A DNA stretch of 63,658 nt, filler included, from Octopus bimaculoides (GCF_001194135.2; 4 parts of 3 records of this genome joined end to end with filler, not necessarily neighbours in it); one strand, 5' to 3'. Numbered from the whole stretch's first letter, positions 34,243-39,939 are shown. Program-made: numbers and translations. Notes: generated by a model from the letters alone, not told the origin.

Positions 34243-34423
34243 CCTTCATCACATGTTGGTCTCCCTACATGATATTCTGTCTGCTACAAGTCTATGGAAT
34301 GATTCCCAACACACATACCATGCTGGCCGTCGCCACATTCTTCCAGAGCTTGGCACCACTGAATAGTGTTGCCAATCCCATTATATATGGTATCTTCAAT
34401 TTATGTGATTGTAAGAATACAAG
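34243..34423 (+). CDS. CCAP-R: Internal exon of a CCAP/neuropeptide-S-type GPCR (TM6-ECL3-TM7-helix 8)
   Basis: Acceptor tttctctttccattgtgcag and donor AG|gtaagt flank 181 nt = 2 + 59 codons + 2. It reads [60 protein letters not shown], with CWxPY (TM6) and NPxxY (TM7). It closely matches the CCAP receptor signature as I recall it (CWSPY..FDLLQV.G.IP...[19 protein letters not shown]). Confidence 0.93.
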
Positions 34424-35107
34424 GTAAGTCGCTTACTTTCGTCCCTTTTTTTTCTTTCAGTTCACTTTACTGTCTGTCTGTCTGTCTGTCTGTTTATTTT
34501 CCATTTCTCTCTCTCTCTCTTTCTCTCTCTCTCTCTCTTTCTCTCTCTCTCTCTCTCTCTCTCTCTCTCTCTCTCTCTCTCTCTCTCTCTCTCTCTCTCT
34601 CTCTCTCTCTCTCTCTCTCTCTCTCTCTATATATATATATATATATATATATATATATGCATATACGTAAACACACACACACATACACATGTACATACAT
34701 ACATCTATATACACATGCATATATGTATATGTCACTCTTTTCTCTCCTCTTTCTCTCTACCTCTCCTCTCTCAATCTCCCGTCTCTCCCTTCTCTCTCTC
34801 CTTCCCCCTCTTTCTACTTATATGTCTATATATATATATATATATATATATATATATATATATACGTATGTATGTCTGTGTGTATGTATTTATATTTATA
34901 TATATATGCTTGAGGACAATGATGGGGATCAGGTATTTGGAGTATTGGTGTATTGGGAGTTTGATGTGAGGGGCGGTCAAAGTAAAGAAGTGGAGGGGGA
35001 CCCATTTTTTAAATTTGCATTCAGCCTCAGACTGGGAGATGTCAGTGGACTTAAGGGGAAGACTCGTCTTCCCAGAGTAGATCATGGTAAGAGACATGTT
35101 CCGGTTC

Positions 35108-35312
35108 TCCAGTGGTTAGGGCAGCGGACTCGTGGTCATAGGATCGCAGTTTCGATTCCCAGACCAGGCGTTGTGAGTGTTTATTGAGCGAAAAACACCT
35201 AAAGCTCCACGAGTGTGTGGAGTGCTCAGCCACTTGCACGTTAACTTCACGAGCATGCTATTCTGTTGATCGGATCAACTGGAACCCTCGTCGTCGTAAG
35301 CGACGGAGTTCC
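35108..35312 (+). mobile_element. tRNA-derived SINE, other family
   Basis: A-box-like cagtggttagggcagcggactc and B-box-like gtttcgattccc, then a non-tRNA body. Confidence 0.7.
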
Positions 35313-35319
35313 AACCAAC

Positions 35320-37005
35320 TATTATTTAACATGTCGTACAGTATCCAGTATCGTAATGCTGTTGATTGAAGATGTGTGTACCAGGTGTTTGTAGTGTCTG
35401 TCAAGTCACAAGGAACTCAGACAGACAGTGCTTTACGCAATATGCTTGCAGTTCCAAGTAATACCGATTTCTGCAATACACATAAATTGCAGTGTATTTC
35501 TGAAATTTCCAGATTTTTTTCAGGTTGTGGGGTATTGAACCTAATGCTCCGATGACAATAGGGATAATCGTTATGTTTGACTCTCGTAGCTGCCACATTT
35601 TAGCGATCTCAATCCTCACGTTTCCATATTTATCAATGTTTTCTCATTCTTTCATAATAATATATTGATCTCCTGGCGCTGCCGCGTCGATTATTCGGCA
35701 CTCATGTTTGTCCCTCCTAAAGGTTGCTATATCTGGCCTTCGGTGCTCTAACACGTTGTCTGTCTGGAAGTCAAAGTCCCAGAGGACTTTCGCCTTCCCC
35801 TTTTCGTCCATTACATTTTCCGATGTATGTTGGTACCAAGCACCCGTTACCCGTTATCCATACTTCCGGCTTAGTAGCCAGTGAAGGTTTTGGGCTACCT
35901 TGTACTGTTTGCGCTTGTACTCTTTCTGTGCAACACTTTGAAGCACTAACAATGTGAGTTACGCTTTCGACCCTCTTCCCACGCATTCTGCAGCGGTTCG
36001 TTGCACTTGTATCGTTTATATCCCTTTTCACTGAGTTGGTAGTCAATACCTGATTCTACGCAGCGATGATTAGGCTTTCAGTCTTCTTTTCTAGGTCACC
36101 CTTGCTGATCCACCTCCATGATGCTTCCTGGTCTTTTAATTTGTTAGTTTCATGGTGGAACTGACCATGTAATTCCATGCGGAGTAGGGTTTCTTCTCTC
36201 GTTGGCTATTCGTGATCGGATTTCATTAGTACTCTCAAGTCCATTTTTGCTAAATTCTGCACTAGTAGCGTACTGTAGCAGGTCTTGTTTTCTGTTTACC
36301 AAATATTCTGCCATGTTTCTTCTTTCATTGTTGATGCACTCCCGTACGCTGATCAGCCCACGTCCACCTTTACACCTCTTCACGTAAAGCCTGTGTACGT
36401 TCGCCTTAGGGTGGATGGCACCATGTATTGTCATTGTCTTTCGGGTAGTGCGATCGAGTTGGTTAATCTCCGCTTGTGTCCATTTCAGGATGGCTGCACT
36501 GTAGCGGACTACAGCAACAGCCCTTATGTTGATGGCAGTCCTAAAGTTCCTTGAGTTGAGTTTTGATTTCAAGAGAAGTTTGAGGCGCTTCAAATATGCA
36601 GTGATGACTTTGTCTTTCATTTCTCTGTGCAAGATATTGTCCAGCTCTAGGATCCCAAGGTACTTGTACCCATCATCATCCAAGTTTTCCTTTCTCTCTC
36701 CGTTTAGCAATTCTATACCCCTACAATCTGCTCTTTCCTCCCATTTCAAAGTGAGCACCGCACTCTTCGAGATACAGAATTCCATCCCAATATCCTTGCA
36801 GCATATCTGTACAGTCTCAACCAGCTTCTCCATTTCAGGCTCTGCTTTTGCGAACGGTTTAAAATCATTTATGAAGACGAGGTCCATTCTTTCTCAGATC
36901 ATAGTGCGCGTTAACTTTGCGTAGGGCTACAGAAAGTGGGATTAAGGCTATAACAAATAATAATGGTGAACAAGAATCTCCCCAGAAAATACCTCTTTTG
37001 ATTGG
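35320..37005 (-). mobile_element. R4/Dong-clade non-LTR retrotransposon fragment, copy 2 (RT to C-terminus and 3' UTR)
   Basis: Reads IKRGIFWGDSCSPLLFVIALIPLS (RT), FINDFKPF (decayed FMDD), GYKYLGILE, HPKANVHRLYVKRCKGGRGL, CRMRG..VESVTHIVS, IIDAAAPGD, IAKMW..IIPIVIGALG. Clearly diverged from copy 1. Confidence 0.9.
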
Positions 37006-38245: not shown

Positions 38246-38249
38246 CTAT

Positions 38250-39552
38250 TGCAACCGAGTTGAAGCCAGGGGTGTTAAAAGTACTGTCGAAGCTTCTTCT
38301 GCAGTTAGCGGATGGTTTTCAGAACCAGAGGGGAGTTCTGTTTGGTTTTGGAAATATCATCAAAGAGTCTCCCCATGCGTCGGCGTGCATGGACGTAGCT
38401 AAACTAGAGAGAGCTCCCATTCACAATCTCGACGTAAAACGTAGTGCGGGATTTATCAACTATGAGTTGAGTCGTCGAGGTGCCAAGCAACTCAAATTAG
38501 CATCATCTTCCCAAGTTAAATCCAAGTCGGCTGATCTGATTGAACGTCGAGAGTCCGAGGCATTGAGGCAACATATCAAACTCATCAAAGCTGGGGCGTG
38601 AGTGCCTGACATCATTAAAGAATGAGATAACTGCCAGCAGCAGTTAATAGTGGAGGGACTGGAAAAGAAGGAAATCATCAACATTGCTGTGGACAGACGA
38701 CGAACAGCCGACATGAATATTTTGAAAAGTTATGGTGGATCGTTTATTAACAGCACTGAGGTAGATGTCTATCTAATGGCAGATATACCAGTTAAAGAAA
38801 ATGTCGATAGGTTGTATTTAGAAATCGGATATATCAGAGACACTGCTCTTTCTGTGCCAAAAGCCAGCGATATTTTCCGCCTTAAATAAAATGATCGAAA
38901 ACTGTCAATGGAACGATATGAAATAAACTTGAAAATTCACTTGGATAGTGTGAGTTGCAAGACAGACGTAAGCCATATTGATTTCAATCATGCATTGGTG
39001 TGAGGTTTTGAAGCCATAATGGTTGTAAAAGTATAATTGTATCATATAAATTACCGAACTCGGGAAATGTTTTTTTTTCTTTTGTAAAATGAAATTACTT
39101 AATTATTTGTTATTAAACTGCTTATTCCACATCATTCGTGTTCTATGACCTCAGACCATATATAAAGACATATCAGATGACATTCTTGGTAACAGCTACT
39201 GATTTCGTTAAAAAATTGTGCATTTTGACCGCCATCTTGGATTTCCGCCATTTTAGAAAATCAAATTGCAAAATTAATACTATTTTTGGATTCAGTGTCT
39301 TAAAAAGCACATGCTAAGCTAAAATATATTTTTACGTACACTATAGGGTTTTAAATCGATTAAATCAGTGTTTACCCCTATTTTTTCTTTGGTGGTAATG
39401 GTGGGGTTTCAAACTTCAAGGGGTATTAAGGGTGGGGGTGTTACCAAAATCTTAATCGTAAAAAAAGTTTATATCATTGTTTTGTGACCCTAACCACAAC
39501 TTTTCGGGAGGTTCTCCAAAATGAAGCTCGAAAAAATAAAAATAACATCCCA
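38250..39552 (+). mobile_element. Decayed DNA-transposon-like element (3' part of a long ORF plus structured subterminal region), superfamily unassigned
   Basis: ORFs 38260-38601 and 38650-38889 are in the same frame, broken only by two TGA stops (..LERAPIHNLDVKRSAGFINYELSRRGAKQL.. GGSFINSTEVDVYL..RLYLEIGYIRDTALSVPK..). Downstream 39180-39550 has transposon-end-like motifs (ccgccatcttggatttccgcc) and ends ..cccaccccacta. Confidence 0.5.
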
Positions 39553-39653
39553 CCCCACTACTTAGACACTCCCCCGATATTTCTGGCCTTGTGCCAAAAT
39601 TTGAAATCAGTATATTTGTGCATTTACTTTTATCTGATATATATATATTTCAG

Positions 39654-39939
39654 AAATGCTGCTTGTTGCAGTGAAATGATTTGTAAATGCTTCTATGACA
39701 GAAGAGCTAGAAAAACCACAACTTTCAGATCTGTAACATCTGGATACACCACAGTCGTTGAAACAAACTTCACTCACAGAGAACATTTGGAGCAGACAGC
39801 ATCAAGGCGAGACTCTGGAGTGCCGTATGTGAAAAGTGCCATCAGTGACACAGAGCGGAAGATCCTTCTTCGAAATCTCAACACAATCGCGCCTGAGAAA
39901 ATAAAAAACAGAAAAAACATCCGTGAATCAAAAATATAA
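39654..39939 (+). CDS. CCAP-R: Terminal coding exon of the same GPCR (cytoplasmic C-tail, stop TAA)
   Basis: Acceptor atatttcag|A completes the split codon AG|A (Arg) in the correct phase. It then reads NAACCSEMICKCFYDRRARKTTTFRSVTSGYTTVVET...RESKI* (94 aa). Membrane-proximal Cys and Ser/Thr clusters are typical of GPCR tails, and there are no stops despite TE-rich surroundings. Confidence 0.75.

Follow-up and report, generated by a model that had tools for sequence, protein, structure and literature searches.

Does the repeat-rich DNA around two short open frames of Octopus bimaculoides conceal the end of a working neuropeptide receptor gene? The window analysed here, 63,658 nt of joined parts (filler included) from assembly GCF_001194135.2, contains at positions 34243-39939 a locus for which a sequence-only reading had proposed a spliced G protein-coupled receptor (GPCR) of the CCAP/NPS receptor family, buried in transposon debris. 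The comparisons described below, made on the piece 31767-42410, indicate that it is very probably the 3' end of a rhodopsin-class NPS/CCAP-type neuropeptide receptor gene, and the orthologue of an annotated gene of the cephalopod Argonauta hians (GAB1600926.1). Among bilaterians, the NPS/CCAP-type family is sister to the vasopressin/oxytocin-type receptors. Exons for transmembrane helix 1 (TM1) to early TM6 would lie upstream of the piece.

Two exons joined across a 5.2-kb intron

The proposed structure consists of the following parts:

34243..34423, plus strand: exon A, the penultimate coding exon (181 nt), encoding late TM6, the third extracellular loop, TM7 and the beginning of helix 8
34424..39653, plus strand: intron (5230 nt, GT…AG), cutting a codon past its second base and holding microsatellites and retroelement fragments
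39654..39939, plus strand: terminal coding exon, whose first base finishes an Arg codon and which encodes a 94-aa cytoplasmic tail ending in a TAA stop at 39937-39939
39940..40526, plus strand: candidate 3' untranslated region (UTR), to the first AATAAA (40521-40526)

Exon A has an acceptor reading ttctctttccattgtgcag|CC (canonical cag|) and a donor reading AAG|gtaagt, and is free of stops in frame 3, as the proposal of a 181-nt exon with canonical splice sites had it. Its absence from the open reading frame (ORF) track, also claimed, holds for a threshold of at least 60 aa but not of 50 aa, where a 52-aa ORF (34269-34427) begins at an internal Met within the exon. The introns on either side cut a codon past its second base, so that the exon starts within an Ala and ends within an Arg codon. 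The terminal exon has an AG-type acceptor, atatatatttcag|AA, and the split codon AG|A (Arg) is completed across the junction in agreeing phases; the phase-compatible partner 5.2 kb downstream, with its Cys- and Ser/Thr-rich tail, thus stands. Together the exons encode 155 aa, with a tail that opens NAACCSEMICKC, closes ESKI* and reads in full NAACCSEMICKCFYDRRARKTTTFRSVTSGYTTVVETNFTHREHLEQTASRRDSGVPYVKSAISDTERKILLRNLNTIAPEKIKNRKNIRESKI.

Two independent relatives bear on whether these exons belong together. The first is the Argonauta receptor GAB1600926.1 (here P0002), annotated as a cardioacceleratory peptide receptor and encoded on BAAFZT010000017.1. All 155 aa of the joined octopus peptide align with it (66% identity, E=1e-71), and the alignment crosses the junction unbroken, with CKNTR|NAACCSEMICKCF in the octopus opposite CGN-R|DGACFSEVVCKWF in Argonauta, to a C-terminal ESKI identical in both products. 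At the Argonauta genomic locus (L002), cag|CCTTCATCAC…AACAG|gtaaac frames the homologous exon and the terminal exon begins ttgcag|GGATGG; the ~2.8-kb intron between them interrupts that Arg codon too, in identical phase. The second relative, L001, is a 970-nt public contig from the Logan assembly of SRR24189498, which stays open from the third intracellular loop (ICL3) via TM6, TM7 and the tail up to a stop codon and then has a trailer containing AATAAA; because its coding sequence spans at least three exons in the octopus and Argonauta, it is most simply read as a spliced transcript of a related species. In a tblastn search against the piece, the L001 protein matched, in order, exon A at 77% identity (E=4e-29) and the terminal exon at 42% (E=9e-12), and apart from these two exons no match was better than E=0.19. 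The colinearity of L001, the end-to-end alignment of P0002 and the shared intron position and phase in Argonauta place the exon pair far beyond chance, and the proposed 34423/39654 junction agrees with both the Argonauta gene structure and the mRNA-like contig.

A different arrangement has nonetheless to be weighed, in which exon A is real but spliced elsewhere, or the gene has alternative 3' ends, and the 94-aa tail is not the main or not the sole product. The junction is known here from sequence and relatives, the pyrimidine tract before the 39654 acceptor is (TA)-rich and moderate (0.65), and at five more in-phase AG sites a tract of at least 0.70 precedes a frame that is open over 60 aa or more. 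These alternative acceptors, within and past the intron, however, open low-complexity or antisense-retroelement frames that have no homologue, and were rejected for lack of homology. Besides exon A, L001 matches the 39654 exon only; the Argonauta model uses the same codon; and the 39654 exon shows coding-type substitution. We regard such an arrangement as very improbable.

Both exons are, to judge from their substitution pattern, under protein-level purifying selection, since the differences from Argonauta fall mostly at third codon positions (per codon position, exon A shows 0.14/0.14/0.57, the terminal exon 0.30/0.20/0.67). Codon-position counts were used in place of the NG86 dS, as synonymous sites are saturated; dN is 0.155 for exon A and 0.309 for the terminal exon. 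Alignability of the two genomes at the level of blastn is limited to exon A.

This pattern bears on a second alternative, namely that the locus is a decaying 3' stump of a CCAPR-type gene among transposons, from which a receptor is no longer made. Retroelement fragments and microsatellites are abundant around the exons, and exact look-ups of two ORFs found no identical product on record in public gene calls. Furthermore, the exon for ICL3 and early TM6 (…IPKAKIKT.KMT..IVL), which in Argonauta lies ~660 bp upstream of the exon A homologue, was sought by tblastn in 31767-34242 and not found in these 2.5 kb. Against decay stand the two intact frames, the canonical splice sites, the conserved intron position and phase, the third-position bias of the differences (dN 0.16-0.31 against saturated dS), and the retention of the stop and of ESKI; in addition, large introns filled with transposable elements are nothing unusual in genomes of this kind, and the upstream intron is broken by an assembly gap (33504-33610). 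A pseudogene is improbable on this evidence; a very recent inactivation may have escaped it, as the upstream exons are not in the piece.

Assignment to the NPS/CCAP-type receptors

The 3' end of the receptor gene carries both class-A hallmarks, CWxP in TM6 (as CWSP) and NPxxY in TM7 (as NPIIY), together with a TM7 signature of the family:

34254..34265, plus strand: CWSP, the class-A CWxP toggle motif, with a CW.P column invariant across all aligned receptors
34278..34280, plus strand: Cys at what we take to be position 6.55, from an alignment of 30 sequences
34344..34388, plus strand: TM7 family signature of 15 residues, overlapping NPxxY (NPIIY at 34374-34388)

We take CWSP to be C6.47-P6.50 of the class-A GPCR numbering, and the assignment of the Cys codon to 6.55 follows our own numbering from there. 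The joined peptide matches Pfam 7tm_1 (PF00001) over profile positions 212-260 of 260, the C-terminal fifth (E=1.9e-5, below the gathering score). PF00001 is annotated in P0002 and in those listed relatives for which a precomputed Pfam entry exists.

A protein database search with the octopus peptide alone yielded one relative among 3 candidates; this sparse yield is due to the word index, and a two-sequence profile was needed. The profile built from the peptide and L001, which also took in the ICL3 and TM6 of L001, matched 284 proteins, and among the best 120 of these (E=6.6e-72 to ~1e-30) almost every named one is an arthropod or mollusc CCAP receptor, with a few NPSR (JGI labels). Two of the profile matches (P0085, P0088) are of separate note. 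One goes under the name 'Vasopressin receptor [Mactra antiquata]'; it contains the CCAPR signature and is probably misnamed. The other, a 118-aa 7tm_1 protein 61% identical to the query, is filed under a Micavibrio aeruginosavorus metagenome-assembled genome and suggests that animal DNA has entered a bacterial bin.

Searched against solved structures (PDB), P0002 found OTR (2e-22), V1aR (4e-21), GnRHR (2e-19) and V2R (~1e-16 to 5e-18), with the next receptor type at 6e-10, a gap of ~6 orders of magnitude. By sequence similarity, this ranking places the receptor in the vasopressin-related clade; no NPSR structure is among the PDB matches listed. A search of the PDB with the exon alone, which put nociceptin and S1P receptors first, was set aside, as 60-80 aa of generic TM6-TM7 are too little for the purpose.

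For a finer placement, exon A was aligned with 22 CCAPR-type proteins, with OTR, V1aR and GnRHR as three vertebrate outgroups (their segments taken as printed by the PDB searches), and with four vertebrate NPSR fragments, whose sequences and names are database records. Identity over exon A is 58-87% to the CCAPR-type proteins, 41-44% to vertebrate NPSR and 30-33% to OTR, V1aR and GnRHR. Neighbour-joining distance trees with bootstrap, computed over 54-82 columns, separate the CCAPR-type proteins from OTR, V1aR and GnRHR (97-99%), join CCAPR and NPSR as one group (96%), and recover as clades both NPSR (99%) and the octopus gene with P0002 and L001 (83-94%). According to earlier work, NPS- and CCAP-type receptors are orthologous, and arose by duplication from VP/OT-type receptors (PMC4422128). 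With matches, identities, trees and this published orthology in agreement, the proposed CCAP/NPS family call is supported at the level of sequence, the best matches being CCAP receptors and the joint CCAPR and NPSR group standing at 96% apart from OTR, V1aR and GnRHR.

The family signature points the same way. The TM7 motif QSLAPLNS[AV][AV]NP, present in the octopus gene, occurs in 22 of the 23 CCAPR-type rows in total (the exception, P0025, reads NSLAPLNSAANP); NPSR rows have QNLPxLNSAINP instead, and OTR, V1aR and GnRHR lack it. Of the two motifs that had been put forward as diagnostic of the CCAP receptor, this QSLAPLNS-type one therefore holds (22/23 CCAPR rows, no others), whereas LLQV.G.IP does not, since mollusc CCAPRs have LLSVYG, LLDVYG or LCFVFG.

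The main competitor within the clade would be a neighbouring family, of vasopressin/oxytocin type (cephalotocin/octopressin receptors) or of GnRH/AKH/corazonin type. When the profile includes the ICL3 and TM6 of the homologue, OTR, V1aR and GnRHR lead the solved structures, an order that arises because no NPSR structure is among the matches listed; and one top match bears the vasopressin receptor name, although that Mactra protein itself has the CCAPR signature. The identities of 30-33% against 58-87%, and the 96-99% bootstrap separation, speak against membership in these families. So do the OT/VP signatures CW[TA]PFF…Q6.55 and NSCxNPWIY (NSCCNPWIY), which are absent from the octopus gene, where CWSPYM…C6.55 and NSVANPIIY stand in their place. 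We consider this assignment extremely improbable.

A number of observations do count against the NPS/CCAP-type receptor gene end as we read it. The PF00001 score of 24.7 bits is under the gathering score of 30.5, because only ~48 profile positions (~60 residues of the seven-transmembrane core) are present in the piece; exon A alone fails to place the clade among solved structures; and monophyly of the CCAPR-named proteins with respect to NPSR reaches a bootstrap of 48%, 54 columns being too few to separate the two. To these must be added the moderate pyrimidine tract at 39654 and the missing upstream exon described above, and the fact that ligand, coupling and tail functions are inferred.

Position 6.55, the tail and the cephalopod relatives

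Where the octopus receptor reads FCLLQ, most members of the family have Asp at 6.55 (F-D-[LIM]-L), namely 16 of the 23 CCAPR-type rows and all four NPSR rows (FDLLQ or FDILD). Argonauta, L001 and the wasp Venturia have Ser at this position; Elysia, Candidula and Amphibalanus have Asn. With S or N in these six, Cys is confined to the octopus gene among the 30 aligned sequences. Asp6.55 is thus frequent, not defining, in the NPS/CCAP-type family. Among the deviations from the insect consensus that had been listed for this locus, NSVANP is shared with an Ixodes CCAPR and the loss of Asp is found elsewhere too, so that the Cys alone is peculiar to the octopus gene in this sample. IYG[IV]F, also on that list, is common to the other cephalopod receptor (P0025) and to heterobranch gastropods.

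The tail is Ser/Thr-rich and has 5 Cys within its first 12 residues. It had been thought lineage-specific, a view that the following does not sustain, since one of its motifs occurs in arthropod CCAPR tails and another in other molluscs. The first, SGYTTVVET, fits the pattern [ST]xY[TN]T[VM][ST]E found in the CCAPR tails of spider, crayfish and Limulus, with a looser SECSTMTE in a tick. The second, RRDSGVPYV…TERKILLRNL, follows a pattern invariant in the three orthologues (octopus, P0002 and L001):

39805..39831, plus strand: RRDSGVPYV, conserved tail motif with R51, R52, S54, G55, P57, Y58 and V59 invariant in three orthologues, and a predicted basophilic-kinase site (PKA-type R-R-x-S)

In the form RRxSG[LV]P[YF]V…TE[RD]xIL[LM]RNL this pattern is also present in two more contigs, with a weak match in Elysia, a gastropod (hhalign E=3.6e-4, probability 37%). 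A profile of the tail only, searched against 1.84 billion representatives, returned the two known orthologues, the weak fragment P0123 and a pair of long multi-stretch proteins, presumably spurious. P0123, a fourth contig with the motif of the second tail half, reads RRPSGLPFV (E=2.6e-4 in the same search). It is encoded by L003 (Logan SRR26493808, 909 nt) as …RRPSGLPFVRNSLSDKENEILLKTLKSNAPE…, with the motif following non-homologous sequence, and L003 has the look of a terminal exon from another species, in unspliced or genomic form. At the very C-terminus, S-K-I fits a class-I PDZ ligand; L001 differs here (SQIV).

The closest relative is the Argonauta receptor, which shares 87% identity over TM6-TM7, NSVANP, the loss of Asp6.55, the tail motifs and ESKI, and differs in having Ser at 6.55 where the octopus has Cys and in an exon A one codon shorter. 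Its intron is shorter (~2.8 kb as against 5.2 kb). The saturated synonymous sites mark the two as different and not closely related species, and its ICL3/early-TM6 exon is the one lacking upstream in the octopus piece. An O. bimaculoides protein, the CCAPR-like XP_014778736.1 (P0025), belongs to the same family, has IYGIF after NPxxY and is 70% identical over TM6-TM7; it differs in its canonical FDLLQ, its NSAANP and an unrelated tail, and its grouping with the clade of the present gene lacks robust support (18% bootstrap). P0025 is probably the other cephalopod paralogue of this gene, and the relationships fit two cephalopod CCAPR-type lineages. The suggestion that the gene is a divergent paralogue is accordingly plausible, with the octopus gene, P0002 and L001 in a clade (83-94%) apart from P0025. 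In a collection of ~5.8 billion protein clusters we found nothing more of this subgroup than the model from Argonauta and two short fragments, of transcripts or contigs, and literature searches returned nothing specific to cephalopod CCAP receptors or to SRR24189498.

Arthropod CCAPRs (for example Tribolium castaneum CCAPR2, P0039, and the Drosophila CCAP-R of the literature cited in PMC6660194) share CWSPY, LLQVYG.IP, the 12-residue TM7 family signature followed by.IY, and the helix-8 Cys with the octopus gene, at 62-72% identity over exon A, and their chelicerate and crustacean members share the tail motif [ST]xY[TN]T[VM][ST]E. They differ in that most have Asp6.55 (FDLLQ), NSAANP and IYC[LI]FS, and in that the tail half with RRxSG…TERxILLRNL is absent. 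The part they play in ecdysis arose by co-option within the arthropods (PMC6660194). Vertebrate NPSR1 (Spea bombifrons P0128, Manis P0131), of the deuterostome orthologue family of CCAP-type receptors (PMC4422128), shares AFIxCWSPY…FD.L and LNSA.NP.IY, and differs in its 41-44% identity, QNLPxLNSAINP, a short unrelated tail and NPS as ligand. Several truncated vertebrate NPSR models (P0131, P0132, P0136) start just before AFICCWSPY, at the point where octopus exon A starts (AFITCWSPY), which suggests that the intron before exon A may be common to NPSR and CCAPR genes.

Given this distribution, one may ask whether the octopus gene, P0002 and L001 form a cephalopod-specific second NPS/CCAP-type lineage with a shifted ligand preference or different signalling or trafficking partners. 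Such a shift could be, for example, among several CCAP-type peptides of one precursor, or towards another peptide; Asp6.55 would have been lost, with a tail kept that carries the RRxSG kinase site, TERxILLRNL and an S-x-I C-terminus. We hold this more specific proposal to be unlikely, if worth stating.

Surroundings, proposed function and meaning

The intron and flanks of the receptor gene end are rich in repeats, among them a pair of retroelement copies:

35401..38241, minus strand: degenerate 3' half of a non-LTR-like retroelement (LTR, long terminal repeat), in two copies that have diverged, ~38241→36865 and ~36887→35401

These copies hold a reverse transcriptase motif C region, a zf-RVT and a C-terminal domain, at 42-50% aa identity (E=3e-24 and 1e-12). 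Pfam finds zf-RVT (E=1.7e-5, 37244-37579) and RVT_1 (E=0.014, 37918-38241) in the intron, both below their gathering scores; the description of the surroundings as transposon debris is therefore weakly confirmed, by these matches and the two mutually homologous copies. A related, inverted retroelement fragment lies upstream of exon A (32061-32430, plus strand), and an inverted repeat pairs 32355-32429 with 37295-37369 (73% complementary). Microsatellites of the kinds (TATC)n, (TC)61, (TA)n, (AAAC)n, (TCTG)n and (TG)19 occupy 33048-33094, 33666-33747, 34506-34658, 34819-34907, 40445-40479, 40652-40702 and 42288-42326. The (TC)61 array starts 83 nt past the exon A donor; Argonauta is likewise CT-rich directly after its exon A homologue, and the blastn match reaches 34622 of the window. 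Tandem duplications are found at 33376-33478 (39 nt, 2.6 copies, 96%, abutting the first assembly gap) and 41547-41618 (36 nt, 2.0 copies, 91%). The N runs that mark assembly gaps, 33504-33610 (107 nt, in the upstream intron) and 40705-40957 (253 nt, ~770 nt past the stop), may hide a small exon or UTR element. Scanning the piece for Rfam families and tRNAs gave no match, nor, as expected, did a PHROGs scan of one retroelement ORF.

Taken as the 3' end of an NPS/CCAP-type receptor gene, the locus suggests a function in line with its family. The receptor would bind a molluscan CCAP-type peptide in an extracellular pocket whose walls include TM6 and TM7. In the sister OT/VP receptors the residue at 6.55 points towards the ligand, and the change from Asp to Ser or Cys could for that reason alter ligand preference. 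Downstream of helix 8, the Cys clusters are candidate palmitoylation sites, and the Ser/Thr run and RRxSG site may serve phosphorylation, desensitisation and arrestin-type regulation; the retroelement fragments and microsatellites would be passive intron filling.

No open question is answered by this locus, and a standard eukaryotic gene finder supplied with RNA-seq would annotate both exons. The gene has its orthologue in an Argonauta gene that is annotated already, within a cephalopod receptor lineage of which few members have been sampled; it adds one member to a small, barely sampled cephalopod CCAP/NPS-type subgroup and supplies exact exon coordinates for annotation. In cuttlefish, CCAP-type peptides have been linked to reproduction and circulation (Endress et al. 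2018, cited in PMC6660194). For neuropeptide evolution, a changed ligand-facing residue combined with a conserved regulatory tail offers a modest lead.

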